Positions 1,359-58,304 are shown, numbered from the stretch's first letter. The stretch: DNA of 64,000 nt from Macrostomum lignano (GCA_002269645.1 NIVC01000059.1:1-64000); one strand, 5' to 3'. Notes: generated by a model not told the origin, from the sequence alone. Made by a program: numbers and translations.

Positions 1359-1408
1359 AGAAGGACTATAACAAAAACGCCCAGCCACCCCACCCTCCGC
1401 GCCAAGGG

Positions 1409-1416
1409 TATATAAG
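1409..1416 (+). promoter_or_regulatory. TATA box (TATATAAG) of the SSB-like gene
   Basis: GC-flanked; 51 nt before ATG 1460. Confidence 0.65.
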
Positions 1417-1459
1417 GAGGCGCTCAGGAGCGAGACCCACTCTCAGCAGCAGCAGCAAC

Positions 1460-2140: not shown

Positions 2141-2540
2141 AACGTTTCATAGACCCCGGGCATTGTACAACCTGAGGATCGGAAAGTGTACAATAAACTT
2201 TTTCAAACGTTCATTATCTGCCATTGTTTTTGGTTGCCAATCAACCAACGATGTGCTGCGTCTTTTTGCTCAATGTAAACCAAACTCTGTTGTTATCACT
2301 ACCGGTACTTATCGTGCAGAAGTTAATGTTAAGCCAAACTTTTTCCGCCTTGCCAACTCGAGCTCGCGCTGGGTTGAGTGGGAGAGTGAGGTATTCAATG
2401 GGCTTGTAATAAAGTCCCCATTCCGCAAGGCCAAGTGCCTGCTGTGCGGAAAGAATGGTCGGTTAGTGTTCCTAGGAATACGAAACTATGACGAACTGTG
2501 TAAAATGTACGACCACGTGACTGCTATTCTGCAACTCTAA
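2022..2540 (+). CDS. Divergent TATA-binding protein (TBP)-like protein, no in-frame AUG
   Basis: Two TBP-like repeats: RLQNVVCVN (cf. QLQNIVST), EWESEVFNGLVIK (cf. SYEPELFPGLIYR), GRLVFLGIRNYDEL (cf. GKVVLTGAKVRAEI). The frame is open from 2004 with only CTG/GTG starts. Confidence 0.7.
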   Translation: MELSGNKSNRKNRLQNVVCVNRVFCARWNHLPNLDWARARTFHRPRALYNLRIGKCTINFFKRSLSAIVFGCQSTNDVLRLFAQCKPNSVVITTGTYRAEVNVKPNFFRLANSSSRWVEWESEVFNGLVIKSPFRKAKCLLCGKNGRLVFLGIRNYDELCKMYDHVTAILQL

Positions 2541-2552
2541 TTATGCTTTGCT

Positions 2553-2562
2553 TATAAATAAA
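2553..2562 (+). promoter_or_regulatory. TATAAATAAA: TATA box plus polyA signal
   Basis: 13 nt after the TBP-like stop; 53 nt before ATG 2606. Confidence 0.6.
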
Positions 2563-2605
2563 CAAAATATGCACATGTATGCACGCAATGCTTACCACCT
2601 TAATA

Positions 2606-2968
2606 ATGACAAACGGAATTTCTCGTCTTTGTTCTTGCCGTCGCGAGCTAGAGGAGCTCGGTGACGCGCGACCACATCGAAGGAGGGCCATTATTAGGGG
2701 AGCCGATAATGAGTTGATGCAGTGTCTGTGCGAGTTAAGCCACAATGTACTCAAGGGCAATATCGATCTATCCCCTAGACAGTTTGCAAGGTTGAAACGT
2801 TATAGAGAAGCCCTGCATGACATGGCCGACAAAAAACTGTCTATAAATAGGAAGAAGAATATGATACTATCGGACCCTCAAGTTGGAGGATTCCTACCAA
2901 TTCTCGCCAAGATTGCTGCACCGTTAATCACTGGACTGTTTGGTGGTCTGCTAGGACAACGACGTTGA
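2606..2968 (+). CDS. Polinton/adintovirus core protein with adenovirus pX-like C-terminus
   Basis: LCELSHNVLKGNIDLS...QVGGFLPILAKIAAPLITGLFGG. The GG/FLP plus hydrophobic tail resembles adenovirus pX. In-frame ATGs at 2579, 2588 and 2606. Confidence 0.75.
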   Translation: MTNGISRLCSCRRELEELGDARPHRRRAIIRGADNELMQCLCELSHNVLKGNIDLSPRQFARLKRYREALHDMADKKLSINRKKNMILSDPQVGGFLPILAKIAAPLITGLFGGLLGQRR

Positions 2969-2970
2969 AA

Positions 2971-3534
2971 ATGGACAAGTACGTTGTGGTCCCCGAGGAG
3001 GAATTCAATCAGCTTAGACAGGGTACTCCGCGAGAAATTGCCCCAAAATCGGAGTACGAAAAACTTGTAGAGTACAATGCAAAGCTACAGACCCAATTGG
3101 CTAAAGTAAAACCCCAAAAGACGACAAAGCAGCTATTTTCTGATAGGCAACAACGTATATGGAATATACTAACAGAAAAGCACCCCAGCCTAAATTACAA
3201 CCAATCGTGGGAAGTCGTTTTTGATGGTGAAACTTGGGGTGGCAGCAACGTTTTTGATCTTCTACAAGCCGTCACCACCAACACTAATAATCACCCGAAA
3301 TATTCAACCGCTTTCTGGGCTCTGCTAGACAAGGCCCGTATACCAATGTCTATGCTCGGTCGGAAACAGCTCCCTGTGGAGGAAAAGAAGGTTGACCATA
3401 TGGTTGGTACCGACGATTACCGCGATGAATATGAGCACACAATTGCGACAGACACCCGCGATTTAACGACCACGCGCAACAAAGGTGTAAATGCTATGCC
3501 CAAACTTGTCGATCGAAGGTACCGGGGTGGGTAA
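2971..3534 (+). CDS. Conserved Polinton protein of unknown function upstream of the integrase
   Basis: GGSNVFDLL...FWALLDKARIPMSMLG pattern, typical of the Maverick gene in this position. A possible +1-frame C-terminus (GVGKYHDYQLRPPEKKKKYVTLYK) runs to 3598. Confidence 0.7.
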   Translation: MDKYVVVPEEEFNQLRQGTPREIAPKSEYEKLVEYNAKLQTQLAKVKPQKTTKQLFSDRQQRIWNILTEKHPSLNYNQSWEVVFDGETWGGSNVFDLLQAVTTNTNNHPKYSTAFWALLDKARIPMSMLGRKQLPVEEKKVDHMVGTDDYRDEYEHTIATDTRDLTTTRNKGVNAMPKLVDRRYRGG

Positions 3535-3589
3535 ATATCACGATTACCAACTAAGACCACCCGAGAAAAAGAAAAAATACGTGACTCTT

Positions 3590-3597
3590 TATAAATA
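3590..3597 (+). promoter_or_regulatory. TATA box upstream of the integrase region
   Basis: TATAAATA 45 nt before ATG 3635. Confidence 0.55.
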
Positions 3598-3710
3598 GAA
3601 CCCTAGTCCAAACATAACCGCGCGCCCGGCGGTCATGGGCGCAGCAGCAGCCGCGTCAAAGCTTTGTGTAGACAACTCCCCAGCCGACATTACGTGCAAC
3701 TATTCATGCT

Positions 3711-4810
3711 GTGCATCCACACTTGTTGTCAATGAGGGCTCTAACCGCTCTTCGTCGAGTTTACGAACAAGGAGCCGCCGCTTTTTCAAATGCTGCCCGT
3801 GTCTATCAGGAGGCCAAACGTCTGGCGCCAAACCTGACAAGACGCCAAACCAGGGAATGGCTAGAAACCCAACCGAGTTACACCCGTCACCGGAGAGTCA
3901 ACAGGACATTTAAAACGGGAAAAGTAATGTCGGGAGGATTCATGGAAACTCTACAAGCCGATTTGATGGACATGTCGCGATACAAACGTTGGAATGACGG
4001 ACATAAATATATACTAGTTATTATTGATGTGCTTAGTAAGCAGGCTTTTTGTAGGGCAATTAAACTAAAGAGTGATACCCCCGCAGCGTTTGAGTCAATG
4101 TTGGCGAATGATTTCCCTGCCCGCCCCCTTTACCTTCACGTGGATCGGGGTACCGAGTTTTATAATCAGCGAATGCGCCGCATACTAAAAGACAATAATG
4201 TTAAAATGTACAGCACCAACTCTGTGTACAAGGCAAACATGGCCGAGAGGCTGATTAGAACTCTTCGAAAGCGTCTGGCTCGCTACTTTGAGCACAACAA
4301 CACGTGGCGTTGGGTTGACTACTTACCTAATTTGATAGGCAATTACAACAACACGACGCATTCTACTATTGAGATGAAACCGTCAAGTGTAGGGTTCCAC
4401 AATCAGAAGCGTGTGTGGGAAAAGCTCTACCCGGATCAGCAAAAAGACGACCCGTATATAAAAAGGGGGATTTTGTGAGAATTTCGAAATCTCGCAGGGC
4501 ATTCGACAAGGAGGCATACGACATGTATAGTGAGGAGGTGTACATTATATCCAAAGTTTGCCCTGGACCCCCACATTTTTATCGTATTTCTGATTTGTCT
4601 GGTGAAGTGATTGAGGGACGGTTTTACTACAATGAACTGTCCAAATCTACCCGACCCGAGCGTTTTGTAATCAATAAAGTTTTGCGTAGAAACGTGTTAA
4701 TAAATGGTGTTGCGCACCATTACGTTAGCTGGCGCGGTTATCCCGACACTTTTAATTCATTTGTACCTGTAAATGAAGTTATAAATATACGTCAACGTAA
4801 TAATAACTAA
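3711..4810 (+). CDS. Retroviral-like (rve, DDE) integrase with C-terminal chromodomain; 1-nt frameshift at A5 run 4441-4445
   Basis: QADL / HVDRGTEF / AERLIRTL catalytic triad. The second frame gives KKGDFVRISK and the chromodomain YVSWRGYPDTFNSF. Adding one A joins them as DQQKRRPVYKKGD. Confidence 0.93.
4780..4787 (+). promoter_or_regulatory. TATA box of the minor capsid gene (inside the integrase 3' end)
   Basis: TATAAATA 43 nt before ATG 4823. Confidence 0.55.
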
Positions 4811-4822
4811 TGCGTGGCTACC

Positions 4823-5953
4823 ATGCATCTCTTTCTGCCTAGCAATGCGTGCCCCGAGCACTATCCCGAAAATAATCCGGCTCATTATTTTATTAATTTA
4901 CCGGACACTCTCCACTTTCCGAATCATGAGGTTTGCCTCGAACGGATCTACTTTACCAAAGAATTTGAATCTTTCAAAAAATCTATACCGATCACCATTC
5001 GCGAACAGGAGGGCCTCTTGACGGCTTCGTCGTTTGCAAGCCTTTGTCTCGCAGCGGGTCTGAAAACCCCTGAAGAATGTATTTCCGGCTTTCTAAACGG
5101 TATCCGATACGTTGAAGGGGATAATAAGAAAATTGTCTTTTTAAGAACATCCCCAACCGCCTTTATGATTGTGAATACTTCAAAATCCACCGTCGGCATC
5201 AAATTCCCGGATGCCCTACCCAAGGTGTTTAAACTAGTCGCCGGCTTCGAGTCTAATGAGGATCTACCTACTGAACTCGTATTACACGCGGGGTGTGCAG
5301 CCTCCATCACCGCAGTTGTTGAGGAACCGACTGTACAGTCAATGGACCACGCTCCAATAATAAGACAAGTTACTAGCGCAGCGTCTGATCAAATCTATTT
5401 TATGCAGGGTGGATACTATAGTACACCTAAAAGATTGGTGGAGGAACTCAACGATTTAATTTGGAAACGGATCAAAGATCTCATAGCGGCTCCAGCACCT
5501 AGAAAGGACTTTTTCGGATACAGCGAAGTTACGAATAGGTGTTATTACATCGGCTCGGTGGATTACATGTTTGGGTTGGGGCGCTTGACCAGCGTGCTTG
5601 GTTTCCCAGAGCATGATTATACAACCCCATTTTTCGGTATATCGGATTTCTACGCAAACGCATCAATGGAATTAACCGGTGGAATACAAACAATGTACAT
5701 CTATTCGAGCATAGTCGATTCTGTTATTGTAGGAGACGTTAAAGTTCCTCTGTTGGGAGCTATACCGATGGATCCCAAAGTTCAGGGCGGTCGCGAGTAC
5801 TACGAGTTTGTCAATCCGGCATATCTACCGCTGGTTAAGCACCCATTCAAAACTATTGAAGTACAAATTAACGATGATATGGGCAGGGATATGACAAAAG
5901 TAATGAGGGGCAAGACCGTCTTGAGCGTTAACATCCGCGAAAAGAAGCTATAA
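4823..5953 (+). CDS. Minor capsid protein (penton, single jelly-roll)
   Basis: N-terminal LFLPSN..YPEN.P..Y...LP and C-terminal MYIYSSIVDSVIVGDVKVPLL...Y.P...F.TIEV.I.D..G motifs of Polinton minor capsid proteins; ATG in accATG context. Confidence 0.9.
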   Translation: MHLFLPSNACPEHYPENNPAHYFINLPDTLHFPNHEVCLERIYFTKEFESFKKSIPITIREQEGLLTASSFASLCLAAGLKTPEECISGFLNGIRYVEGDNKKIVFLRTSPTAFMIVNTSKSTVGIKFPDALPKVFKLVAGFESNEDLPTELVLHAGCAASITAVVEEPTVQSMDHAPIIRQVTSAASDQIYFMQGGYYSTPKRLVEELNDLIWKRIKDLIAAPAPRKDFFGYSEVTNRCYYIGSVDYMFGLGRLTSVLGFPEHDYTTPFFGISDFYANASMELTGGIQTMYIYSSIVDSVIVGDVKVPLLGAIPMDPKVQGGREYYEFVNPAYLPLVKHPFKTIEVQINDDMGRDMTKVMRGKTVLSVNIREKKL

Positions 5954-5958
5954 ATAAA
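5949..5958 (+). promoter_or_regulatory. TATAAATAAA at the minor capsid stop
   Basis: Overlaps TAA 5951-5953; 48 nt before ATG 5997. Confidence 0.6.
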
Positions 5959-5996
5959 CAGCACAGCCTCAGTAAACTATATCCTAGTGCTTAATC

Positions 5997-6341
5997 ATGC
6001 CTTCTATTCTGATTGGTGGAGCTTTGCCTGTTTTCGCGGGCGCCCAGAGGGGCAACGGTTTGTTTGGAAGCATTGCCCGCTTCGCGCTGCCAATTCTAAA
6101 GAGTTTTGGTAAAAACGTTCTCCGTCATGGTACTAGAGCCCTAGCAACTACTGTTAACGATAGCCTCGAGCAAGGAGGCAATTTGAAGGAGTCTGTCCTG
6201 CGCAATTCTGTTCAGGCTGCCAAGGACGCCTTTAAAGACACGGTTACCCAAAGGGGTAGCGGACGAAGAAGAAAAAAGGCTCCGAAGCGTCTCAATTCAG
6301 ACATTTTCAGCACTATAAATAAAAAGCCCCGCTTCAATTAG
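5997..6341 (+). CDS. Small basic Polinton virion protein with QxGxG motifs and amphipathic helix
   Basis: QRGNGLFGSIARFALPILKSFGK...QRGSGRRRKK; lies between the minor and major capsid genes. Confidence 0.8.
   Translation: MPSILIGGALPVFAGAQRGNGLFGSIARFALPILKSFGKNVLRHGTRALATTVNDSLEQGGNLKESVLRNSVQAAKDAFKDTVTQRGSGRRRKKAPKRLNSDIFSTINKKPRFN
6314..6323 (+). promoter_or_regulatory. TATAAATAAA upstream of the MCP
   Basis: 57 nt before ATG 6371. Confidence 0.6.
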
Positions 6342-6370
6342 ATTCGCCGAATCGAGTCTGTCTACTAAAC

Positions 6371-7654
6371 ATGTCCGAGTGTCTGTGTACAAAGTCCGAG
6401 TTTGAGCTCTTTGCCCCTCGAGCCCACCAGATTGCCGCTGTAGGTTCAACTACTGAAGAAATCCACCCGGTTGCCAGCGTCGAAAATGCGAGTGTGGTTG
6501 AGTTTAGAATTGTGGGCGGCGAGACGTTTGTCGATCTTAATGACATTGATCTCGAGATTAAAGGTTGTATTAAAAGAGCTAATGGAGCCGATTTGGCGGC
6601 GGATTCAAACGTGGCGCCAATCAATTACCTCTTGGAGACCATGTTCAAAAACGTGTCTCTTTCCATAAATGGTACACATATCGAGTCTAGCAACAACAAC
6701 CACGCCTACAAGGCGTACATTCGTACATGCTTGAGTTATGGGTCTGATTCAAAGTCTAACCAACTGCGGATGATGGGCTACGCTAAAGACGCTGGGGGTC
6801 AAATGGCTGCGGTTGGAAATCCTGGCTTTGTAACTCGCAAGGCGATGGCTGCCGGTTCTCGAACATTTCACCTGTATGGCCCTCTTAGTCTCGACTTTTT
6901 TGTCACCAACGATCGTATGCTGCTACCCTACACTGATATGGTGGTTACGCTCACTCTGCAAAATTCGGGATTCGTTGTAGAGAATCACGCCGAAGGGGTT
7001 GATGCAAAGTTGGTTCTTCAAAGTGCAAAATTACACGTTCGTCGGGTAAAGGCTAACCCCCAACTGGCCTTGGAGATTGAAGAACAGCTGGCGACTCAGA
7101 ATGCAGTCTACCCCATCGAGCGCCTCGTTGTACACAACACCTCTGTCGCTGTAGGAGTTCGCGACGTGTCAATCAATAATATTTTCCCGGAGCAGAAGCC
7201 TAAACTTGTCATTATGGGGATGGTAAATAGTGCCGCATATAACGGGGTGGCTACCCATAATCCGTTCAATTTCGAGCCATTTGGGGCTGACAGTGTGGCC
7301 CTGTACAAGGACGGTGTCAGTCTGTGCGGTCAACCATTCACTCCAAGGTTCGCTGCCCAAAACTATGCTCGCGAATACGCCATGCTGTTTAAGAGCCTAG
7401 GGAAAATGAATCGCGATTTGGACATTGACCTGTCATATTCGGATTATCGCGCCGGTTACTGCTTATTTGCGTGGAATCTAATGCCCGATATGGAACTGGG
7501 TGGACATAGCATGCCTCGCGAGAGAGGGAATCTGACCCTACAGATAAAGTTTTCTGCAGCCCTACCTGCCGGGATTAACGTTTTGGTGTTTGGTTACTTT
7601 GACAACGCGGTGCAAATCACTAGAGGCCGCCAGCCCATTCTGGACTACGTATGA
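6371..7654 (+). CDS. Major capsid protein (double jelly-roll)
   Basis: Intact 427-aa ORF with CTKSEFELF, VEFRI, FVDL, F.NV.L.ING, AYKAYI..LSY, NPFNFE and GNL.L.IKF motifs typical of the Polinton MCP. Confidence 0.93.
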   Translation: MSECLCTKSEFELFAPRAHQIAAVGSTTEEIHPVASVENASVVEFRIVGGETFVDLNDIDLEIKGCIKRANGADLAADSNVAPINYLLETMFKNVSLSINGTHIESSNNNHAYKAYIRTCLSYGSDSKSNQLRMMGYAKDAGGQMAAVGNPGFVTRKAMAAGSRTFHLYGPLSLDFFVTNDRMLLPYTDMVVTLTLQNSGFVVENHAEGVDAKLVLQSAKLHVRRVKANPQLALEIEEQLATQNAVYPIERLVVHNTSVAVGVRDVSINNIFPEQKPKLVIMGMVNSAAYNGVATHNPFNFEPFGADSVALYKDGVSLCGQPFTPRFAAQNYAREYAMLFKSLGKMNRDLDIDLSYSDYRAGYCLFAWNLMPDMELGGHSMPRERGNLTLQIKFSAALPAGINVLVFGYFDNAVQITRGRQPILDYV

Positions 7655-8087
7655 ACACGTTGGAAATTTTGGAGTGTTTAAAACTACCTGTGGAAGTGCA
7701 CGTTTGCCCTCTCGACAGAATTCCTGCACCTGTTTACCCTGCTGCATATGTAATTAATTTTGACACGGGTAATCTGCCAGGCACCCACTGGGGACTGATT
7801 TGCCTACACGATGATAAGAGTGTGACATTTTTTGACCCTCTGTGTATTGAACCCGTGCCGGAATTGCTCTCGGCTTGGATCTCGAAGCATGTACATTCAC
7901 CTGTTGCTATGAATCGCCACCCTGTTCAACACCCTCTAAGTGTAGCGTGTGGGCCGCATGTGATTTTTGTGGCCGAAAAGCACTTTTTAGAGGGTTGTCG
8001 ATTGAAAAGATTTTAAGGGAATGTTACTCTACCAATCTGCTTGAAAATGATTTGATGGTTCGAAAACATGTTCTACAAATAAAATAG
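7651..8087 (+). CDS. Adenain-like cysteine maturation protease; 1-nt frameshift at T5 run 7984-7988
   Basis: GTHW (His), FFDP (Asp), Q..SVACG (Gln/Cys). The -1 frame supplies the C-terminus FRGLSIEKIL...NLLENDLMV. The ATG overlaps the MCP stop (ATGA). Confidence 0.9.
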
Positions 8088-8121
8088 TTTTTAATATTTG
8101 GAGTGTCAACTCGCCCTGAAA

Positions 8122-8751
8122 ATGTACCAAACAATTGATCCTGACGCTCTAAAGTTTGCTCCAAATACTTCGGCGATTTTTGCTGGTGTTAACCAGAGCG
8201 GAAAAACAACTCTTGTTAAAGAATTGCTGCGAAACGAGTTTTTTCAGGACCCTAAGCCTGTTCGCGTTGATTGGTTTGGGCACTATCCAGACCCGGAACT
8301 GTTTGAATTACCGTACCCTGTCAATTTTCGCTCGTCTACATTTAACCCTGAAACCTATGTTCCCGCTCCGAATATTCTACTCGTTGTCGATGATCAAATG
8401 CAAGCCATGGAAAAAAACGCTGCTTTTACCGCATTTTTCACTCGCAAAGTCAGCCATGTGGGATTCCGGCTTTGGTACCTTGTACAAAACCTGTTTGCCA
8501 AGGGCAAGGAGCACCGCACTCAATCCCTTAACGCAAACTACCTTGTATTGTTCCGCAATGTACGGGACGTTAGTACAGTCGCCCATATTGCAAAGCAGCT
8601 TGTCCCCGCTAACCCAAAAAGTTTTGTTCAAATGTACGAAGACGCCACTAGGGAGCCCTACTCCTACTTGATTGTTAATTGCTTGCAGAACGCATCTGTT
8701 CGCTACTATGCTAATGTGTTGGGGCGCTACCCCGTAGTTTATGCTAAATAA
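8122..8751 (+). CDS. DNA-packaging ATPase (FtsK-HerA/A32-like)
   Basis: Walker A GVNQSGKT, Walker B LLVVDD, then QNLF...RTQSLNANYLVLFRNVRD; AATAAA at 8747-8752. Confidence 0.93.
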   Translation: MYQTIDPDALKFAPNTSAIFAGVNQSGKTTLVKELLRNEFFQDPKPVRVDWFGHYPDPELFELPYPVNFRSSTFNPETYVPAPNILLVVDDQMQAMEKNAAFTAFFTRKVSHVGFRLWYLVQNLFAKGKEHRTQSLNANYLVLFRNVRDVSTVAHIAKQLVPANPKSFVQMYEDATREPYSYLIVNCLQNASVRYYANVLGRYPVVYAK

Positions 8752-8839
8752 AACACTGTTGGAGAGCTTTGCTCTGTTTGCCGGATGGCCTGAACCTGAA
8801 ACAACTAAAATACGTGTTTTTTCTTTTCAAGTCCTCTAC

Positions 8840-9503
8840 TGCCCTGGGGGGAGCTCTCTATCACTCACCCCCGGTCTGTCCCGCGCCTCCAGACTGGGCC
8901 GCTCTCTCCGCGGGGGGTGTGATTCATACTCCCTCTCTGTCCACGCCGCGTGCTGCGACATGCCAGGGCAGCGCAGGGTGCCTCCACGCACTCTCTGTCC
9001 CAGCACCCCGTGTCTCTTTGTACCCCACCTCATACTGCTACAGGGGTCGCCTGTTATCTGTCCCCTGCTACAGGGGGATGGCGGCTCTCCACGCACTACC
9101 CCTCCTGCTACAGGGGCTGCTCTCTGTCCCCAGCTACAGGGCTGCTCTCTGTCCCCCGCATGGGGGGCCGGTTGCTCAGTGTACAGGGCTGCGTCAGCAT
9201 CGGGGGTTTCCTTCCTACACTAACCGCGTGCACACGACATTGGTGGGAGGGGCGGGAATCCCCCCGCCGGATGTACACCCCGAGGGAGGCCCATGCGCTG
9301 AAGGTACACTCGCTGGACGCCCAGCCGGCCGGATGTACACTCGCGGGAGGCCCACCCCGCTGGAGGTACACTCGCTGGACACCCACCCCGCTGGAGGTAC
9401 ACCCCGGGGGAGGTGGTACACCCCGAGGGAGCACCTTGCCGCGGTGCTAGAGGCCGACATCAGCCCGACGGACCTTCGCAAAATCGAGCCATTCGGAATC
9501 CCT
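8840..9503. repeat. GC-rich terminal region (candidate TIR) with CTCTGTCC sub-repeats and a 31-bp-periodic GTACAC array
   Basis: GTACAC at 9273, 9304, 9335, 9366, 9397 and 9416; stem GGCGGG/CCCGCC at 9251-9268. The partner TIR is not in the window. Confidence 0.55.
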
Positions 9504-26383: not shown

Positions 26384-27314
26384 CTATTGGTCGTTCTCCA
26401 GATCCTTAAACCAGACGTCGCCCTGCAGCTGCGTCGTCTCGGATGGCAAGTTAAACATGGGCTCCTGGGGTTGCTGATTGACGTACATCGGGAGGCGACC
26501 CAGCCTTTGGCGCACCATATTAAGCATAGTGCAGAGGTGATGGGTCTTGTAGTTTTCTCTGAACACTTCGCACAAATTTTGTATGTAAATACTTCCTGTC
26601 GTCGGGCATCTCAGAGCGTAGTCACCCCTAGTCACCGAGTAGGCAAATAGAAAGTCGAGCTTCTCGGAGAGTTGTCTGTTTAACCGCCTGTTGGAGGCAT
26701 CGAAATTGCTTGGACTGCTGTTGTTGCTTCCGACAGACGACACCGGCTGGTCGACGTTTGACTCGGCTGTCACGCTGGCGCCGACGCCGAGAGGCCGACA
26801 GGCCTGCAGGAAGAACAGCTTCGGCTTCTGCTGCAGAGAGTCACAGCAGTAGAATGGCGCGAATATGTCATCTAGGGCGACCCACTCGCCATCGCAGCCA
26901 AGAACGCGGTCGCATTCACCGTGCGACATGATGAAAGCAACGAAACAGTCAAATTTCGTGTGACGATCGCGGGCAGCTAGCGATCGCATCAGGGCGAGAA
27001 TGTCGCACGCGTCCAGATTCTGGTGGACTTGAACCCGAAACTTGAGTGTGTCCTTAAACAGTCGCTCCAGACTGGCTACATCTTTCCTTGAGCCGGGTCG
27101 AGGTTCACATTCGCCTGAGAACTGCTCATTGTTGATGATGACGCACATTCCACGTGGATTGGAGCGCATGGAGTACTGGTAGCCGCGTATAGGCGGCACA
27201 ACACTGGAGTTCAAATTCGAACTGTCCATCTCCGCTGAAGGTACTTCAGCTAGCTGAGCACTTCCAGCGTCAAGCTGCATCTTGACTCCTGCTGTCTCAT
27301 TGCTGGTGGCGCTG
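26384..27314 (-). CDS. Ankyrin-repeat caspase, exon 4: caspase (C14) catalytic domain
   Basis: PRGMCVIINN, RPGSRKD, FIMSHG (His), KPKLFFLQACRP (Cys), DFLFAYS, GSIYIQNLC. Acceptor ttttttacag at 27315, phase 2. Confidence 0.9.
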
Positions 27315-27480
27315 CTGTAAAAAATTAGACAGAGATACAGATAATGTGGAAGATTTTCAAAATTCAGCCAAGCAAAATTTATTTGTTATAAAACTGAGAA
27401 AATATGACGTCACGATTGCATAAAAATCTAAAAATGAATGAGCAACGAGGTACTCTCCACGTTTGTAAAAGCTATCTAAC

Positions 27481-28257
27481 CTTGATGGTATTGGCGCCGT
27501 AGCGGCCTCCCAGCTGCATTTTCGCTTCCTGTCGAGCTTGACCAGCATCTCAATAGCCGCGGTTCTCTTCGCCCGCTTGGCCAGATCCATGGCGTTGCCC
27601 TGCGAGCTCTTGTAGTAGATATCAGCCCCAACATTGGCTAGCAGTTCCAGCATGTCCGTGTGGCCCTTTACCGCGGCTAGGGTGAAAGCGGTGTTGCAGT
27701 TCTTCTTAGGGCTTGTCTGCAGTTCCAGGTCGGCATCGTGACTGATCAACAGTTTCGCTAGCTCCAGCAGATTTTCTTGGGCGCAAAAGTGCAGCGCGCT
27801 GAATCCATCAATTTCTTGGTCGTTGACGCTGGCATGCCTGTCTAACAGTAGCTTGGCGATGTCCATATGGTTAAGCCAAGCTGCTCGAATCAGCGGAGTC
27901 CGATTGTCTTTGCTCCTGGCATTGAGGCCGATGGACTTCTGGTCCAAGAGGACTTTGACAACCCGACGGCTGTTCTGCTGCACCGCGATGTGCAGCGCTG
28001 TGATGCCAAGCTTTTGCTCCGTGACATTGGGATCCGCGCCTCGATCTAGCAGCAGCTTACAAGTACTTTCATCATCATTCCAGGCGCTAGCCATCAAAGC
28101 GGTCCATCCTGGATCCTGTTGGCTTCGTTTGTTGATGCTATCCCGCACCGCTTGGCTAGAATCGAGCAGTTCCTTCACCTTTTCCGGGTTGGCATCCATC
28201 GCTGCCTTAAACAGTCTGGCAGTTGTCAGCTCCTCATTGTTCTTCGCGTTTTTAGGC
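27481..28257 (-). CDS. Ankyrin-repeat caspase, exon 3 (~7 ankyrin repeats)
   Basis: GWTALM, GITALH, RTPLI, GFSALH repeats. Acceptor cttctcccag at 28258, donor AG|GTTAGA at 27480; 777 nt, symmetric phase 2. Confidence 0.85.
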
Positions 28258-28485
28258 CTGGGAGAAGTGCGAGAGTGGAATGCGACAGCGTTAATGGGAG
28301 CCAAACTATTGACAGCTTAAATTTTTAGTTATTACTCACTAGACATTTCCATTTCTTTATAGCATGACATATATAGTTATTCACTTCACGTTGTGGCTAC
28401 ATTTTAGAGGCAATTTCTTGTACATGTAATTAGCTTCGCATAAGGGCCTAGAGACAAGACAATTAATGTCAATTTATGGTCTTAC

Positions 28486-29115
28486 ATTTCCTCTAGCACA
28501 GCATTCGCCGCTTCGAATTGCCGAGCCGCCTTGGCTTCCTCGAGAATCTGTGGCAGCCATGTTTCGCGACTCAAATTATCGTCGAGTTTACGAAGTCGAT
28601 TGAGCATCAGGCGCAGCACGTCCAGATGGCCACGGACGGCGGCCAACTTGGCCGGACAGAGCCGGCCGTCAGCACCTGGTGTCATCAATTCGTCCGCGCT
28701 GGCTCGTTCAATAATTAGCTCTGCGACATCCGTGGCCGAGCCCAGGTCGGCGCACAAGGACAGCGGAGTTGAACCCTGGGCGTCTAACACAGCCAGGCTG
28801 GCACCAGCTTGCAACAGCAACTTGACGCAGGACTCGCTGCCGCACTGGATGGCGGCATGCAGGGCAGTTGCTTTAGTCGAGTCTTCCGCTCGTCTATTGA
28901 CCTGAAAGTCGAGACTACTACTGCTGCCGATTAGTGAAAGTACCACTTTCAATGACTCCGTCTTGCCCAGTCCGGCAGCCAGCATCAGAGGCGTCCGGCC
29001 TGTTGTTCTATCTACGTTGGTCACTGTCTCCGACTTCGCTAGCTTCCGCACGCTTTCTAGATCGTCTTTGCGAATGGCGTCGGCAAGGCTGAGGCCTGCC
29101 GGTGCTGTCGGTTTG
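28486..29115 (-). CDS. Ankyrin-repeat caspase, exon 2 (~5 ankyrin repeats)
   Basis: GRTPLMLAA, ATALHAA, GSTPL repeats. Acceptor cactttgcag at 29116, donor AT|GTAAGA at 28485; 630 nt, symmetric phase 2. Confidence 0.85.
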
Positions 29116-30079
29116 CTGCAAAGTGATTAAATGTGCTTAAAGTAGTGTTTGTATAGTATGTCGTTTTTATTACTAGAAAAGATAGAAATATGCAGCGCAG
29201 TATGAGTATATCTCTATTGTGTGAGAGAATCGAGGATTGCCCATTAAAAGAGTTAATTATTTCTCCAATGGTTGCCCACCAAAAGAATCTATGATTGCCC
29301 ACCAGTGTGACCACAAAGAATTTATAAAAAATAGAGCAGTAAAAAATAGCGCAGCAGGATTCTGGAGTGTTTTAATGGCTATATGTGCTTTTTCAGAAAC
29401 TAAAATAGTAAAATAGCCAAATAATGGATGCAAGCTAGGATACATAGTGATGTAGCATTCTCGACAGGCAGATCAGGTAGTTCGTCTTCGTCCTAGCGCA
29501 AGCATAGTTTTCAGCAATTTCACTGTCCGGGGAGGCGACAGGGATAACCTCCGCCAGCTCATCTGTGAACCGGAACGAGCATCCTTCTTTGTAGTTTGTC
29601 AGCATCCGGGTCTCCGGGTCTTCATTAGAGGAAAAAATGTACAATTATTATTTGGCTCTGTTGCCCAGAATTGGACTGCTTGAGATGCTTCATTGCTGAT
29701 TTGTGCTTGGCATCACTGATTACGCTGAGCCTGAGTTGATGACGATGAACTTGAAGGCAAAGAAAAGCTCATGAATTTGCTTTTGGCTGAAGTTAGAAGC
29801 ATTTGAAAGCTTGAAGCATGCAGTCTGAACTAAATACATGTGCGAGCGCAAGTTAATCATTTGCATGCACATTCTTGTTTCAACTACTGATCAACTACCG
29901 ATCTTTTCTAAGTAAAAAATGAGCATGAAAGGCAAGAAAAAAGGGTTCATAGTTTCAATTTTTTTTTTTAGCGCAGATATGACCAAAAAGTAACTGTAAA
30001 ACCAAAATAGTAGCGCAGTTAAGCAGAAAACTATAAAATAGTGTGGTCACACTGCAAATGCTCTCTAAAAAATCAAATT

Positions 30080-30775
30080 TTGCTCCAGTGATTGCCCATC
30101 AACCGAGAGAATCGATGATTGCCCACTGAAAGAATCAATGATTGCTCCAGTGATTGCCCACCGACCGAGAGAATCGATGATTGCCCACTGAAAGAATCAA
30201 TTGTTGCTCCAGTGATTGCCCACCGACCGATAGAATCGATGATTGCCCACTGAAACAATCAATGATTGCTCCAGTGATTGCCCACCGACCGAGAGAATCG
30301 ATGATTGCCCACTGAAACAATCAATGATTGCTCCAGTGATTGTCCACCGACCGAGAGAATCGATGATTGCCCACTGAAACAATCAATGATTGCTCCAGTG
30401 ATTGCCCACCGACCGAGAGAATCGATGATTGCCCACTGAAACAATCAATGATTGCTCCAGTGATTACCCACCGACCGAGAGAATCGATGATTGCCCACTG
30501 AAACAATCAATGATTGCTCCAGTGATTACCCACCGACCGAGAGAATCGATGATTGCCCACTGAAACAATCAATGATTGCTCCAGTGATTGCCCACCGACC
30601 GATAGAATCGATGATTGCCCACTGAAACAATCAATGATTGCTCCAGTGATTGTCCACCGACCGAGAGAATCGATGATTGCCCACTGAAACAATCAATGAT
30701 TGCTCCAGTGATTGCTCTCTGAGTGAATCGATTATTGCCCATTAAAAGAATCAATTGTTGTTCCAGTGATTGCTC
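30080..30775. repeat. 62-bp minisatellite (~11 copies) in intron 1 of the ankyrin-caspase gene
   Basis: ORF-track repeats are offset by exactly 62 nt; a degenerate copy lies at ~29220-29310. Confidence 0.95.
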
Positions 30776-30910
30776 CCGAAAGAATTAACAATTCTCCACA
30801 GCAATCAAGCTTCTGCACTTTAGGTGCAGTGCAGATATGTCTCATATATACGGCCTTATCTTAAAAATAAACTTGTACCATGCAATCAAATCAACGCTAA
30901 CAAAACTCAC

Positions 30911-31776
30911 TTCCTGCTCTGACTACTCCAGCTCTGCAGCAGTTTCAGCAGCTCCTTCGAATCGCTGCCAGACACTTGGTCCAAGGCTGTGCAACCCTCG
31001 CTATTGGCAAAATTAGGATCGGCACCGTTCTCGTGCAGCAGCTGCACCATCTTTGCGTGGCCATTAAGCGAGGCTAAAATTAACGCTGTATTGCCTTTGA
31101 ACTCCGGCTTAGTTGGCTGGTTAACCATCTCAGGTGGTGCCTTGGCCAGGATGCGCTGTGCGATCTCGCGCCTGTCCAGCTGGGCGCAAAGGTGCAGCGC
31201 GGTGAAGCCGCTATTAGAGGCCAGGTCGAGTTTGGCGCCACGATCGATGAGCAGGTGAGCTAGCTGAACGCTGTTCTCAAACACGGACTTCATTAGAGCT
31301 GTGAATCCGCGACTGCTTTGCTGGTCGAGATTGATTGTCGGCTGTTTTAACAACACTTCGGCTAGCTCCGTGTGGCCCAAGTCAGCACAAATCATCAGCG
31401 CGGTAATGTCGTTCTCAGCCAGCAAGTTGACGTTGGCACCGGCTTGTAATAGTAACTTGGCTACGCGAATCGAATTCTGCTTGGCGCAGATGTGCATCGC
31501 ACTGAGCCCCGAGCTATCTTGATGGTCCAGGGGAGCTTTCTGTTCAATGAGCAGCCGGCAGACGTCCTCGCTATCCTTCCAGGCTGTGGCCATCAGCAAA
31601 CTCCTATTGCGATCTCTCTCATTAGTCCAGTCAGCAGGCAGGCCCTCACTAAGGTAGGACTGAACCTGGCTTACATCGCCTTTGCGGCAGAAGTCGTAGA
31701 ACTCGATGCAAAGCGGCGTCTTCGATGTGGTTTGGCAGCTGCGGCGGGCGGCGGCTGCGACGACAGCAGCGGCCAT
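30911..31776 (-). CDS. Ankyrin-repeat caspase, exon 1 (~8 ankyrin repeats)
   Basis: ATG at 31776; ITALM, GFTALM, GFTALH, GNTALI repeats; donor AA|GTGAGT at 30910, phase 2. Confidence 0.87.
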
Positions 31777-33269
31777 GCTTAATATTTAGACTGTAGAGTA
31801 AATTTCTACTATTAATTGTATTAATAGTGCTAGTTTAACTGAAAATCAGTAAATAGCATGCAGCATTCAGACTACACGCTGTGGCGAATGCCAAGTTGCC
31901 ATTATATCGGTTTCACTGTGGTCTGTGGCTAACAGAAACGGTTGAAACTTCGAATGAAATAGCGGCAAGTCCAGTAGTAGTCTGTCTGATAGAGGGGCGG
32001 GGGTTGGGTGAATGTGCGGACACCCCACCACTCAAACCTCCAAGGCAAGGGGTTGTTGGGACGGCGGGCGTGCGGAGGATTAGAAAGGTTTGGGGCGTGG
32101 AGGCACATAGGTGTGTGTACATTCAGCCCAGAAGCTAAAACAAAAGCTCCAACGCACGTATAGCGAAGTTCCACTAGCCATAGACGACTTTATTTACAAG
32201 ATCTCGGAAGTAGAATCTAGGAGTCCATGGGCTGGCCCAGTGTCGAGCGCTGAATTTCTAAACCGCTAAACAGTTCTGGCAGACTTGCTGGCAGACAGTG
32301 AGTTGTACCGAGTTCTGAGTTCTGAGTAACTTGCTTTCTGACGCGCGCCCAGGCGCGTTGCAGGCTCAGCTCAGGCACCCCACCTACCAAATTTAACAAG
32401 TTTATCGCTTAGTTAGTTGACGAGTCACCCCACAATTGAGACAAGAACCGCGTGGGCCGTGGTGTGATTGTGTGAACTCAATCACACGTTGGAGAGTGTA
32501 CACTGTACAGTATATTGGAGCATCAGGAGCCGGAGCCATAAAAGTACGAGTCAAGAGTAAAGTCGTGTTAGGTGTCCTAACTGAAGACTGCTGGGCCTCA
32601 AATTAAGTCTGTCCTATTAGTCCTAATAGAGAGTTCAGCTAAGGACTAGGCCTTCTGGCAAGCGGGAGTGTTGCGCAATCTTTTATGAGGGTAGCGTAGA
32701 GAAGAGCGATGAGATAAGAGGATGGATGGGATGAGAGAAGAAAGGACAGAAAAAATTAAAGAGAAGACTTGTGGGGAGAGAGGAGAGCTGAGAAGAGACA
32801 AAAGCCTAGAGCAGGCTATCGTGAACTTTCAAAAGGACAAGAGGGCCGGATAATGAGACTTCGCGGGCCAGATTTTGCCGACCCCTGGCCTAAAACCTCA
32901 AACCTTTTCAGCAATTCTCATTAGAATATAAAATTGTTTGCAAAAATGCATCAAACAGTCGCATCAAATAGAGTCGCATTGCAAAAAAGACAATACTAGA
33001 TTTCGTATTCTTGCAACTAAGCTAATCCTTAACCTTAAAATCATAGTGAATTGAACAGAATTTACATCTTTTTTAAATATTCTGAGCATCTTCGAGAAAG
33101 TGAAACACAGACCACAACATTGCGGTAACTCAAAACGTTTTATTTCTTTCTAGGTAGTGCCTTGACAATTAATTTAAGAGAGACAACCGACTTAACACAG
33201 TGCAGTATCAAGTTGCTTCAGTGCAGATTTGGTTTTTTAACGACTCTCCAAAACGAACTGCATTGCAGT

Positions 33270-33998
33270 TCAATACTTTCCAGTATTCTTTCCGGCATAG
33301 TGGAAAATGCTATTGGGCTTAAACTTATAGCCGCCACCGTTGTTTCCTGATGAAGAAGCGTCGTTTCCAGAGTAGCTTTCTTCACCGACCCTCCGTCCAC
33401 CGCTGTAGCCACTTCGTCTACCGCTGTAGCCACTCCGTCTACCGCTGTAGTCACTCTCGATCCGTCCACCGCTGTAGTCACTCCGTCCACCGCTGTAGTC
33501 ACTCCGACCACCGCTGTAGTCACTCCGACCACCGTTGTAGTCACTCCGACCACCGCTGTAGTCACTCCGTCCACCGCTGTAGTCACTTCGTCCACCGCTG
33601 TAGTCACTCCGTCCACCGCTGTAGTCACTCCGTCCACCGCTGTAGTCACTTCGTCCACCGCTGTAGTCACTCCGTCCACCGCTGTAGCCACTTCGTCCAC
33701 CGCTGTAGCCACTCCGACCACCGCTGTAGTCACTCCGTCCACCGCTGTAGCCACTTCGTCCACCGCTGTAGCCACTCCGTCCATCGCTGTAGTCACTCCG
33801 ACCACCGCTGTAGTCACTCCGTCCACCACCATAGTAGTCATCCCATCCACCGCCGTAGCCGCCTTGTCCATCGCCGTATCTGCTGCCGCTGTAACCATCG
33901 CTATAATAGTTTCTATTGCAGTGAACAATCTGTGCGGCGCCTAATAATACGACTCCAACTATGCACCACAAAGCACTCCGCTCCGAGATTGTTGTCAT
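33270..33998 (-). CDS. Secreted Gly/Ser/Tyr/Arg-rich protein with ~21 (D/G)YSGGRS heptads
   Basis: Good-context ATG; signal-peptide-like ALWCIVGVVLLGAAQIVHC; the 21-nt repeat stays in frame between unique Tyr/Gly-rich flanks. Confidence 0.75.
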   Translation of the reverse strand: MTTISERSALWCIVGVVLLGAAQIVHCNRNYYSDGYSGSRYGDGQGGYGGGWDDYYGGGRSDYSGGRSDYSDGRSGYSGGRSGYSGGRSDYSGGRSGYSGGRSGYSGGRSDYSGGRSDYSGGRSDYSGGRSDYSGGRSDYSGGRSDYSGGRSDYNGGRSDYSGGRSDYSGGRSDYSGGRIESDYSGRRSGYSGRRSGYSGGRRVGEESYSGNDASSSGNNGGGYKFKPNSIFHYAGKNTGKY

Positions 33999-36923: not shown

Positions 36924-38130
36924 TCAGCCGAACATTTCGTCCACAAGCTGGTTGCTAAGCGTGCGAAGAGCAATGGCCTCCTCGGTTTCGTCGTCAGCTA
37001 CGCGACTTTCAGAGTACTCCGCCGCGGCTGGTCGGTCATTTTGCCAGCGGCAGGGGCAGACGAAGATGCGACGCAGGCCTCGACGAAGCGACGGGTTGAG
37101 CCAGGCGTAGAGCACTGTGCTGCAGGCGCTGTTCAGGTAGACAAGTAGCGCCGAGAAGCGAGTTAAGGAATCAGACACGTGCTCGGGATGAGTTTCCAAC
37201 AACTCAGCAACATAGAGAGCCACTGCGGCAGGGTGCAGACTGAGTGGCTCGCAGCCAAAACGATCACTGGGAGCAGGACGCGTTTAAAACGCGACGCTGC
37301 GCCAGGCGCCTGAGCGTCCGTGTTGCGCCGGATGCAGCGGTAGAAACCCAAGAAAAGAACCAACGGCAGGACAAGCCAGATGCAGATAGCACCGATTTTT
37401 AAACCGAAGCTCGACGAGGGTTGGTCTGCCGTATCACTGTTGTAATTGTCCAAGAAGTGGCCGCAGTAGTCAATGATAGCACTTCCGTTTCCGGTCGATG
37501 GGCTGACTGTGGCATAGGCGCCAATACAACTCATAACTGAGGTGCTCAGGATCCACAGGCCCAGCATGAGGCCCCACACAAATCGGGGACTGCGCAGTCT
37601 GTAAAGTTCAGGCCTCACCATGTCGACGTAGCAGTCGAATCCCATTGCGGTGATGGTGAAGGCGATGACAGTGAAGCTGGTATATTTGACCGTGTAGTTG
37701 ATCTGGCACAGGCCTCTTCCCCATTGCCATCCACTTCCCGTTGCCAGGATGAGCGGCACAATTGAGACAAGGTGAAGCAGGTCGGCAACAGCCAGGTTAG
37801 CCAGGTAGATGTTGACCACATTGTTTGGAGTTTTCTGAATCACCGCAACAATGAGAGCGACCGAGTTTCCGATCGCTCCCAGGACCAGGATGACGCCAAA
37901 AACGATGCTGAGAAGCAACTGCAGTGCAAAAGAAGAAGACAGCATGATGAGCGGCGATCGCGAAGAGGCAAAGACAGGTTCGAATGTTCTGAGAGCTCAA
38001 TAAAAAAATGAATTAATACATTACGAGCTAAATACCCCTTCGAAGACGAAGTCAAGCCCTCATCAGTTCCGGGACTCCCGGCAAATCTGCGGGTGACTGC
38101 AATTCGAGACACCTTCGCCCACGGCGCCAT
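36924..38130 (-). CDS. Rhodopsin-family (peptide-receptor-like) GPCR with one frameshift near 37225; possible pseudogene or assembly error
   Basis: GNS (TM1), NIYLANLAVADL (TM2), WQWGRGLC, DCY for DRY, CTLP (TM6). TM7/helix 8 (YLNSACSTVLYAWLNPSLR) is in the -1 frame. A 47-nt phase-2 intron at 38035-37989 links to ATG 38130. Confidence 0.8.
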
Positions 38131-39915: not shown

Positions 39916-40409
39916 GGAAACAGAAAACATTGCATAAACAGTTTTTAGCGCTCCATGAACAGAATTTTTGCTTAAGTTCTGCCAGCCAACTCAGTTGTCT
40001 GGGTCAACCCCTGTGCAAAGTTGGAGAAAAAAATTAATCAATACACAAAGAGACTCCTATAGGTCTGCGCTGAGCATGCGCTTCGTTCTCAAACTTATTA
40101 TTGGACTCGGGCATGTTGACTCAACATTTCCGACTTTCCGACAGCTATACAGATATTTACAAAAGTTGCAGCGCTGGCTGTTTGGAAGAGCAGCAGCACC
40201 GGACTCAATCGCCAGCGACTAAAAGCAACAATTACAATTGCCTGAATAAGTATTGACGTAATTAGCTTATGGCCTACGAGTTTTGTAAGTAAAATAACAA
40301 TCACTTTATTAGTATGTCTTGTCGTTTACTCTTGTAGAAATGCGGTTGGATAACTCTTGGTCGTGGATTATCATGGATGGGCTCGATTACACTACCATTG
40401 TCCTGCTGT

Positions 40410-40802
40410 AGCAGCAGGGGCGCCAGCAGCAGGGGCGCCAGCAGCAGGGGCGCCAGCACCAGGGGCGCCAGCACCAGGGGCGCCAGCACCAGGGGCGCCA
40501 GCAGCAGGGGCGCCAGCACCAGGGGCGCCAGCACCAGGGGCGCCAGCACCAGGGGCGCTAGCACCAGGGGCGCCAGCACCAGGGGCGCCAGCACCAGGGG
40601 CGCCAGCACCAGGGGCGCCAGCACCAGGGGCGCCAGCACCAGGGGCGCCAGCACCAGGGGCGCCAGCACCAGGGGCGCCAGCACCAGGGGCGCCAGCACC
40701 AGGGGCGCCAGCACCAGGGGCGCCAGCACCAGGGGCGCCAGCACCAGGGGCGCCAGCACCAGGGGCGCCAGCACCAGGGGCGCCAGCACCAGGGGCGCCA
40801 GC
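40410..40802. repeat. 15-bp GC-rich minisatellite (CCAGGGGCGCCAGCA)n, ~26 copies
   Basis: Direct reading. Confidence 0.97.
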
Positions 40803-40815
40803 GCACTCACCTACA

Positions 40816-42532
40816 ATGGCATTTACCGTACAAAATACGTATCATCAGTGCATTTTCGCAAAAACGTTTACCTCAATTTTCTCACACCATTCCCCAGCAC
40901 CTCACCGCAGTCCCCTTCTGGTGCTGCTGCTTCTGACCGCCGGATCGCCGCTTCCATCCGCATCAACGTCGGACAGCTGCCGGAGGCCGGCGGTTGAACA
41001 GCAGCTAGCAGCTCTGCTGGACAGCGCACTGGATGCCAGCAGTAGCGGGAGCACAATGAACTTAACGATCCCCGGGAATCAAGTTCGTGTAGTACGTCTG
41101 AGCCTCACTGGGGTGGCCATCATCGGGCTGAGCGACCGGGGCACCGGGAGCGCCGGCAGCCGCGACGGCGTCCTGCAGTGGTCGGGCAGCTTCCTTCTAG
41201 CCTGGAATGACACTAAATCGGTTGCAGCGGCCAGGAAGAACAAGACAGAGTCTGCGAACATCGACTGGGCGCCTGAGATTGGCGTTGAAAGCGGTCTCAG
41301 TGCCACTAATAATGCCAGCATTGCGGACATCTGGAGTCGGTGAGCTGCTGAAGGATTTTGGGCGCTAGACACTGGAAATCGGGTGTCAAGCTGGGGATTC
41401 GAGTATCAGGAAGCAGGTATCGGGAAGCAGGTATCGGGAAGCAGGTATCGGGAAGCAGGTATCGGGAAGCAGGTATCGGGAAGCAGGTATCGGGAAGCAG
41501 GTATCGGGAAGCAGATATCGGTAAGCAGGTATCGGGAAGCAGGTATCGGGAAGCAGGTATCGGGAAGCAGGTATCGGGAAGCAGGTATCGGGAAGCAGGT
41601 ATCGGGAAGCAGGTATCGGGAAGCAGGTATCGGGAAGTAGGTATCGGGAAGCAGGTATCGGGAAGCAGGTATCGGGAAGCAGTATCGGGAAGCAGGTATC
41701 GGGAAGCAGGTATCGGGAAGCAGTATCGGGAAGCAGGTATCGGGAAGCAGGTAATCGGGAAGCAGGTATCGGGAAGCAGGTATCGGGAAGCAGGTATCGG
41801 GAAGCAGGTAATCGGGAAGCAGGTATCGGGAAGCAGGTGTCAGGAAGCAGGTGTCTGAAAACAGACAATGCCACTCAATGAGAGTAGAGCAGGACAAGGC
41901 TATAAGGGCTTTGACAACCCTCCCCATGCTATCGCAGACGCCACGCCTCAACCCGAGCGGTGCGGCCAAACGGCGAGGTGACCCTCCGCTTCCGGGCCGC
42001 CCTGCGAACTCAATGTCGAGTAATGCCCGGATCGTCTAGCTTTCCATTTTACACGCGACGCTGCGACCTTCGACTTGGCCGGCAGCGTCGGAGTCGCCGA
42101 CGACTCCGCTTGTTGCTTAGCAACGCCAGTTTGCTGGTGGCCGGCTCCAGCAGCTGGTCAGTGACCAAAGTTCGAGTCCTGCGTAGGCGTAAGCGACCAA
42201 GACGTCAACACAGAGTCCTCCCTGGCGACGCTGGGGAAGGAGCAACGGGAAGCGGAGGATGGGGAGGCGACGTGGACGACGAGCAGCAGCTGTTCCGCCT
42301 GGAGGTGGCGCGAGCTCTGGCCTACTATTGGATCCTGGCGGCGTTGCCTTTGGCAACCGCGCTCACCGCAGCGGCGGCGGCCGCGTTGGCCCTGCGGCTT
42401 GCCGGCAGTCGGGAGAGCGGGCAGCGCTGCCTGGACTGCGGCTGCGTGGCCGTCGGCTGCTGCCTGCTGTTGCTAGGCCAGGCTTCGGTGTACTTTTCAA
42501 CCGGAGGGCAGCAGCAGGTCGAGAAGTTTTGA
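40816..42532 (+). CDS. Divergent Cys-loop ligand-gated ion channel subunit (exons 40816-41339 and 41938-~42520; 3' exons uncertain)
   Basis: Signal-like LLVLLLLTAG, WND and W.PEI motifs. Phase-2 intron CG|GTGAGC...atcgcag|A. Cys-loop C-RVMPGSSSFPFYTRR-C, pre-M1 R.LAYY..LP, M1 and M2-like segments. Confidence 0.72.
41400..41855. repeat. 14-bp minisatellite (GGGAAGCAGGTATC)n in intron 1 of the channel gene
   Basis: Same monomer as 39595-39915. Confidence 0.95.

Positions 42533-48098: not shown

Positions 48099-58304
<10,206 letters not shown>

Follow-up and report, generated by a model that had tools for sequence, protein, structure and literature searches.

A four-exon gene joining a long ankyrin-repeat array to a caspase domain in the free-living flatworm Macrostomum lignano

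The first 64,000 nucleotides (nt) of contig NIVC01000059.1 of the Macrostomum lignano assembly GCA_002269645.1 (the window) carry, on the minus strand at 26384-31776, the gene BOX15_Mlig008053g1 (hereafter Mlig008053), whose four exons encode about 20 ankyrin repeats followed by a caspase domain. Window numbering is contig numbering, because the public protein PAA92194.1 is encoded at 26384-31776 of NIVC01000059.1. An earlier note, made from the sequence, had read this locus as a hidden gene of 866 + 630 + 777 + 931 = 3204 nt and 1067 amino acids (aa), with GT donors, pyrimidine-rich AG acceptors and three phase-2 introns. Scripted splicing, identity to PAA92194.1 and a splice mapper agree with that structure, and every coordinate was correct, showing that a multi-exon eukaryotic gene can be modelled correctly from sequence alone. 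The gene is not hidden, being already deposited as GenBank PAA92194.1 / UniProt A0A267H3C4, and the architecture is not new for animals: ankyrin-repeat (ANK) caspases are known from parasitic flatworms and from a single annelid (PMC11463336), and a jellyfish case was found here. In our assessment, the locus is very probably a real, intact and expressed ANK-caspase gene. The joint proposition that it is such a gene and also acts as an initiator by recruitment is slightly favoured.

Joining the minus-strand exons by script gives an open reading frame (ORF) of 3204 nt and 1067 aa in which the sole stop is the terminal TAG. Exon 1 (30911..31776, 866 nt) begins with an ATG at 31776-31774, whose Met aligns with the start Met of the paralogue A0A1I8I0Q1 (P0003), and encodes residues 1-288 plus 2 nt, comprising a first ankyrin block of ~8 repeats. 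Exon 2 (28486..29115, 630 nt) encodes a second block of ~5 repeats and then two long helices (residues 443-502), and exon 3 (27481..28257, 777 nt) a third block of ~7 repeats that is paralogous to the first; both exons are symmetric (2-2). Exon 4 (26384..27314, 931 nt including the TAG at 26386-26384) encodes residues 758-801, a disordered linker containing D788, and the entire caspase domain. The intervening minus-strand introns, each bounded by GT..AG, are intron 1 (29116..30910, 1795 nt), intron 2 (28258..28485, 228 nt) and intron 3 (27315..27480, 166 nt), the last of which separates the ankyrin prodomain from the exon for linker and caspase. Their donors are AA|GTGAGT, AT|GTAAGA and AG|GTTAGA, respectively, and their acceptors, which follow pyrimidine-rich tracts, are TTTGCAG|, CTCCCAG| and TTTTACAG|. 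All three introns are in phase 2, because 866 mod 3 = 2 and both 630 and 777 are multiples of 3. In the six-frame ORF list, the stops that terminate the exon-1 and exon-2 ORFs (TGA 30909-30907 and TAA 28484-28482) lie immediately inside the intron, where the frame has run past the donor, and the exon-3 ORF continues to a stop at 27359-27357, ~120 nt inside intron 3. A splice mapper whose sole input was the protein plus the locus arrived at these four exons too. Upstream of the gene, a pyrimidine-rich AG acceptor (tactctacAG, minus strand, 31791..31800) can be read from the sequence 14 nt before the ATG; it is possibly a spliced-leader (SL) trans-splice acceptor or the acceptor of an intron in the 5′ untranslated region.

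The spliced product is identical (100%) over its full 1067 aa to PAA92194.1, which is labelled 'hypothetical protein BOX15_Mlig008053g1 [Macrostomum lignano]' and was found by an exhaustive HMMER search with exon 4 as query. A word-indexed protein search with the same exon (E<=1e-10) returned one fish caspase-8 only and failed to recover PAA92194.1. As described in the genome paper (PMC5730564), the GenBank annotation of this assembly is a subset, called 'coregenes', of a transcriptome that StringTie and TACO assembled from RNA-seq data with the genome as guide; its transcription units were cut wherever experiments had mapped an SL trans-splice site or a poly(A) site. Since that annotation was built from RNA-seq transcripts, the four-exon structure already rests on transcript evidence; the pipeline kept the caspase exon joined to the others, and no separate trans-spliced gene was split off. 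Residues 1-859 also align gap-free and in order with A0A1I8G5A3, a 3′-truncated UniProt model of 859 aa that is older and was made independently, so that this model likewise crosses all three junctions. Identity to an independently made public gene model over 1067 residues places the gene structure far beyond chance. Neither Mlig008053 nor Mlig008805 or Mlig019067, both introduced below, was mentioned in the literature searched.

The same facts bear on whether the fusion could be an annotation artefact, in which an ankyrin-only protein (exons 1-3) and a 298-aa caspase starting at ATG 27280 would be made from a polycistron that is SL trans-spliced at the 27315 acceptor. Such an arrangement would draw on an ATG that lies in frame 34 nt inside exon 4 (ORF 26384-27280) and on the occurrence in M. 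lignano of trans-spliced genes (~39% of genes) and of polycistronic precursors (~7% of transcription units; PMC5730564). It is nevertheless very improbable: a pipeline that cuts at mapped SL sites kept one gene, all three junctions are in frame and free of stops, with no stop in exon 3 before its donor, and two independent gene models span the exon 3/4 junction. In addition, the fusion of ankyrin repeats and caspase recurs in six other paralogue groups, a monogenean and a jellyfish.

Part of the M. lignano DV1 genome is present in duplicate, blocks that share 95% identity or more accounting for 180 Mb (PMC5730564), and a second copy (homeologue) of the gene is present on contig NIVC01003507.1 as PAA51086.1 (Mlig008805g1), with its ORF intact. 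Alignment of the two loci reveals 57 substitutions and 0 indels over the 3204 nt of exons, compared with 528, 12 and 11 gap columns in introns 1, 2 and 3, respectively (551 in total), and the six splice dinucleotides with their flanks are identical in both copies. Substitutions at the three codon positions number 13, 13 and 31, and the ratio of nonsynonymous to synonymous rates (dN/dS, NG86) is 0.33 overall, ~0.30 for the ankyrin part and ~0.37 (0.0168/0.0451) for the caspase part. Indel-free exons, gapped introns, retained splice sites and a dN/dS of 0.33 together indicate a functional, spliced coding gene. A pseudogene is rejected on account of the intact ORF in two copies and the dN/dS of 0.33, and a bacterial or viral origin on account of the spliceosomal introns and the location in a flatworm contig. 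Intron 1 also contains a 62-bp tandem repeat (11.3 copies, 94% match, 30080-30773), the motif of which recurs in degenerate form near 29240-29310. The 528 gap columns against the second copy are consistent with a difference in copy number of this repeat and show that the length of intron 1 is free to vary.

The caspase domain (Pfam Peptidase_C14, PF00656) spans residues 812-1046, encoded at 26450..27154 on the minus strand, and matches profile positions 1-224 of 233 with E 6.3e-48. The catalytic residues are His889 (CAC 26923-26921), within FIMSHG, and Cys930 (TGT 26800-26798), within QACRP, both codons being read on the minus strand. Searched against PDB, exon 4 matched 196 caspase sequences at E<=1e-3, the best being caspase-7 (E 1e-30), with RxGxxxD, SHG, QACR and the Arg of the small subunit visible in the alignment. 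The S1-pocket residues R830, Q928 and R993, equivalents of Arg179, Gln283 and Arg341, align with the conserved residues of every domain in an alignment of 37 caspase domains. An AlphaFold2 model of the whole protein, built from a 44-row alignment, has a mean predicted local distance difference test score (pLDDT) of 68.7 overall and exceeds 90 in the caspase core, for which Foldseek gives template-modelling (TM) scores of 0.87-0.89 to caspases-7, -3 and -8. The catalytic domain is of the caspase-3/7/8 type, with a His889/Cys930 dyad and predicted Asp specificity. Its small-subunit motifs, A-L-R and GSIYIQ, lack the tryptophans of the executioner motifs SWR and GSWF, and resemble those of caspase-8 and of other ANK caspases.

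Candidate Asp processing sites had been proposed to flank the large subunit, and they fall within the two segments that AlphaFold2 leaves disordered, namely the prodomain linker (740-801, ~60 residues) and the inter-subunit loop (935-973). D788 (AEMD|S) lies in the linker, and D946 (SNVD|Q) and D963 (SNFD|A), the only Asp residues of the inter-subunit loop, lie in the latter; the second copy retains each of these sites.

A weakened or dead caspase homologue, acting like cFLIP as a decoy or scaffold that binds rather than cleaves, could be suspected from the replacement of the Gly after Cys-Arg by Pro (QACRP), from the corresponding QGCRI of the closest paralogue, from the long branch of the Mlig008053 clade in the tree described below, and from the dN/dS of the caspase part between homeologues (~0.37), which is not very low. 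That ratio is still well under 1, the dyad and three S1-pocket residues are kept in both the gene and its homeologue, and A0A1I8I0Q1 keeps the dyad and both arginines. Moreover, active caspases with a residue other than Gly at the fifth position exist, such as Drosophila Dredd (QACQE), which counts against a decoy. Overall, we consider a weakened or dead enzyme improbable.

Among characterised caspases, the product resembles caspases-8 and -10 in combining a long prodomain with a p20/p10 domain, in the small-subunit motifs x-Y/F-R and GS(I/F)YIQ (as in fish caspase-8) and, presumably, in activation by proximity. It differs from them in having a ~750-residue ankyrin solenoid with no death-effector domain matched. 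No Pfam match to CARD or DED was obtained at E<=0.01 in the 1067-aa protein, the N-terminus of which is all ankyrin or helical; recruitment of the FADD type cannot apply. Caspases-3 and -7 are the best solved-structure matches by sequence and fold, with the same dyad and S1 pocket, whereas executioners have prodomains of <30 residues and the SWR and GSWF motifs, neither of which is found in the Mlig008053 product.

The prodomain places ~790 residues ahead of the catalytic domain. Pfam ankyrin families cover residues ~60-740 in eight stretches (Ank_2, E 1e-81), and a phmmer scan with a consensus ankyrin repeat detected 15 repeats, which become ~20 once capping and degenerate repeats read by eye are added. 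Together with the Peptidase_C14 match, this agrees with the ~20 repeats fused to a caspase that had been proposed. The repeats are arranged 8+5+7, corresponding to exons 1, 2 and 3. Paralogy of exons 1 and 3 had likewise been suggested, and the encoded proteins are 34% identical over 178 aa (E 2e-25), compared with only E 3e-9 between exons 1 and 2; they are colinear at both ends, including an atypical long loop that precedes the penultimate repeat, and differ by one repeat. Given this likeness and the phase-2 boundaries, it is plausible that blocks 1 and 3 represent the duplication of a multi-repeat block. The same three-block layout is present in A0A1I8I0Q1, which would place the duplication before the split from that paralogue. 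AlphaFold2 predicts helix pairs throughout residues 20-746 and a long helical hairpin at 443-502, and Foldseek matches the N-terminal part to the 24-repeat solenoid of AnkB over 720-731 aligned columns. The 24-repeat membrane-binding domain of AnkB/AnkR (PDB 4rlv, 5y4d) is thus the best structural analogue of the prodomain. The arrays of giant ankyrins use their inner groove to bind several partners and are not joined to a protease domain; the Mlig008053 array differs further in being broken into three blocks by linkers and the helical hairpin.

Caspases with long prodomains are monomeric zymogens that are activated by induced proximity. The ~790-residue prodomain, the caspase-8-like motifs and the placing of the only Asp residues of the predicted flexible loops where processing sites would be expected argue for an initiator-like reading of the Mlig008053 product, and by analogy it may be a zymogen of the initiator type that is activated by ankyrin-mediated recruitment, a proposal that we hold tentatively, at somewhat less than even confidence. 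Specifically, the ankyrin solenoid would bind a partner or scaffold, taking over from a death-fold domain the task of recruitment, and binding would concentrate the protease domains, leading to dimerisation and self-cleavage at Asp residues in the two flexible loops. A cut at D788 would free the prodomain, and a cut at D946 or D963 would part the large and small subunits. The active enzyme could then cleave downstream substrates, for example the caspase-3/7-like enzymes with short prodomains that are also encoded in the M. lignano genome. The product may also be a sensor-coupled protease, as the earlier note had suggested.

Several observations weigh against the combined reading of an expressed gene with an initiator function. 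The RNA-seq support for the gene model is second-hand, coming through the annotation method. The active-site pentapeptide departs from QAC(R/Q/G)G in having Pro for Gly, with QGCRI in A0A1I8I0Q1, so activity could be altered. When the caspase domain was scored against group profiles, which differ in depth, the executioner profile (185 bits) stood slightly above the DED profile (170 bits), with the parasite-ANK profile lower (132 bits) and CARD at 120 bits. The ankyrin part of the AlphaFold2 model has moderate confidence only, and contacts between ankyrin repeats and protease are not readable from it. Finally, PMC11463336 puts forward the initiator role of ANK caspases as no more than a hypothesis.

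The profile scores bear equally on an alternative in which the caspase is not an apical initiator and the ankyrin array is an intramolecular inhibitor, or a module for substrate binding or localisation, attached to a protease that is executioner-like or serves a non-apoptotic role (differentiation, germline, antimicrobial defence). The highest score belongs to executioners and the best sequence and structure matches are caspases-7 and -3, but scores from hidden Markov models (HMMs) of unequal depth are not strictly comparable, and the executioner SWR and GSWF motifs are missing, with caspase-8-like residues instead. Binding and inhibition of caspases can be achieved with engineered ankyrin proteins (work cited in PMC11463336), although the long linker, predicted to be disordered and carrying an Asp site, suggests release of the prodomain and not stable autoinhibition. 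The expansion to seven or more groups, Mlig008053 included, among which the number of repeats varies widely, also looks more like a diversifying recognition family than one conserved death switch, as this alternative would have it. We consider an inhibitory or targeting array unlikely, but the most serious competitor to activation by recruitment.

In a 2024 survey of lophotrochozoan apoptosis genes (Genome Biol Evol, PMC11463336), 'ANK caspases' were recovered as monophyletic, with the DED caspases as their sister group, and ANK and DED caspases were reported to be mutually exclusive. The first ANK caspases came to light in Schistosoma, with a further case in the annelid A. virens, and they were reported to be restricted to parasitic flatworms and absent from free-living ones; the sole unusual M. 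lignano caspase was said to have a kinase-like prodomain. The architecture and the gene are, in short, already described and already annotated, respectively, but the presence of such genes in free-living M. lignano contradicts the published restriction. The best 150 hits of the exhaustive search were surveyed by means of an ad hoc ankyrin HMM, source names and Pfam. Ankyrin repeats with Peptidase_C14 were found in at least six further M. lignano paralogue groups besides the Mlig008053 locus, in the monogenean Cichlidogyrus casuarinus (KAL3319427.1, 799 aa) and, in doubled form, in the jellyfish Sanderia malayensis (EP00794_P009253, 1127 aa).

The closest of the M. lignano paralogues is A0A1I8I0Q1 (2049 aa), the caspase part of which is 55% identical to that of the Mlig008053 product. 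Beyond the caspase domain, its model carries on for another ~1000 residues and takes in a PIRC1_2 (Piercer) domain; almost certainly, adjacent genes were fused by read-through in this older annotation. The remaining groups are Mlig000705 / Mlig009621 (~700 aa), the related P0185 (406 aa), Mlig019067g1-4 (599 aa), Mlig006436 / Mlig011129 (625 aa), and Mlig001045g1/3/4 (~650 aa). Intron positions differ among the groups: the caspase domain is interrupted by introns in Mlig019067 and Mlig001045 but not in Mlig008053, and Mlig006436 alone shares a phase-2 intron just downstream of its ankyrin region. In Mlig019067g1 (NIVC01000010.1, gene 1501-5419, five exons), a phase-0 intron splits the active-site motif (FFIQ|ACRG).

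Searching with a profile made from seven ANK-caspase domains yielded 98 caspases, including those of the cestodes Mesocestoides and Sparganum, with no Schistosoma sequence among the 98. By caspase domain, Mesocestoides, Sparganum and the schistosomatid Trichobilharzia regenti have clear orthologues of the Cichlidogyrus protein. In a neighbour-joining tree calculated from Kimura distances over 253 columns for 37 caspase domains, with 200 bootstraps, the three Neodermata sequences group at 100% and are joined by Mlig019067 at 68%. Mlig008053, Mlig008805 and A0A1I8I0Q1 form a clade at 100%, on a long branch whose position is without support, and a third M. lignano ANK group (006436, 001045, 000705, P0185) is recovered at 60-79%. 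Mlig019067g1 is the M. lignano ANK caspase closest to the parasite clade, and M. lignano holds at least one gene that is probably orthologous to the parasite ANK caspases, with lineage-specific ones besides. Mlig008053 may descend from the ancient ankyrin-caspase fusion of the parasite genes or from later shuffling within M. lignano, the intron positions favouring neither.

The Mlig008053 product and the ANK caspases of Neodermata, from the same phylum, share an N-terminal ankyrin prodomain that replaces CARD/DED and a caspase-8-like catalytic domain, and both are without the tryptophans of the SWR and GSW(F/Y)IQ motifs. They differ in that Mlig008053 has ~20 repeats, compared with ~3-5 recognisable in Cichlidogyrus, and the motif QACRP instead of QACRG, in a host that is free-living and not parasitic. 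The Mlig008053 caspase domain is also only 32% identical to that of Cichlidogyrus, and it lies outside the Neodermata clade in the tree. The Sanderia protein, fifth-ranked in the exhaustive search (35% identity), similarly has ankyrin repeats directly N-terminal to the caspase. Unlike Mlig008053, it consists of two [Ank-caspase] units in tandem, each with few repeats, keeps the SW(R) and SW(F/Y)I tryptophans and belongs to another phylum. Independent fusion is most likely, given this tandem layout, the kept tryptophans and the other phylum.

Elsewhere in the window, a run of long intron-less ORFs (166-427 aa) occupies 858-9500, all on the plus strand. It includes an rve integrase core ORF at 3711-4478 (Pfam E 8e-10) and a P-loop ORF at 8098-8751 ('GVNQSGKTT') with only faint FtsK/EccC-like PDB matches (E 0.3), and the ORFs at 4814-5953 (379 aa) and 6371-7654 (427 aa) gave no Pfam or PDB match. 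From its gene content, the run looks like a large integrase-bearing mobile element, possibly a Polinton/Maverick-like or endogenous virus-like insertion. The other ORFs noted are on the minus strand. A 242-aa ORF at 33270-33998 has a hydrophobic N-terminus and ~22 copies of a 21-nt repeat (7 aa, GGRSDYS; tandem repeat 33391-33858); rich in Gly, Tyr and Ser, it is reminiscent of flatworm eggshell or structural proteins, and it had no Pfam match. An exon-sized ORF for a rhodopsin-family G-protein-coupled receptor lies at 37163-37945 (7tm_1, E 1.5e-25). Exons for a Ser/Thr protein kinase extend over 54918-58262 (Pkinase E 5e-29 at 54918-55544, the N-lobe starting in the ORF at 58262), parted by a long tandem-repeat tract that is open in several frames. 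At 61216-61692, longin and synaptobrevin domains (E ~4e-14 each) denote an R-SNARE of the Sec22/VAMP7 kind. GC-rich (58-64%) tracts of low complexity and tandem repeats, with several frames open, occur at 40300-41900 and 48100-51900, and a 649-aa ORF rich in Ala, Ser, Pro and Gly (48099-50048) lies within such a tract.

The modest new element of these results is a free-living flatworm with an expanded ANK-caspase family. The published distribution is corrected accordingly, in that the architecture is abundant in a free-living, early-branching rhabditophoran, and this abundance weakens the proposed tie between ANK caspases and the origin of parasitism. More speculatively, and with considerable doubt, ANK caspases may be an ancestral rhabditophoran family that expanded in M. 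lignano to at least seven groups with 2 to ~20 repeats, Mlig008053 having the longest array. By analogy, the arrays would then provide variable ligand recognition in a death or immune system that couples repeat sensors to caspases, following an NLR/STAND-like logic. RNA interference is usable in M. lignano. Transgenesis has also been reported in this species (PMC5730564). M. lignano would therefore be a practical system in which to study the role of an ankyrin prodomain in a caspase, which is hard to approach in schistosomes or tapeworms.

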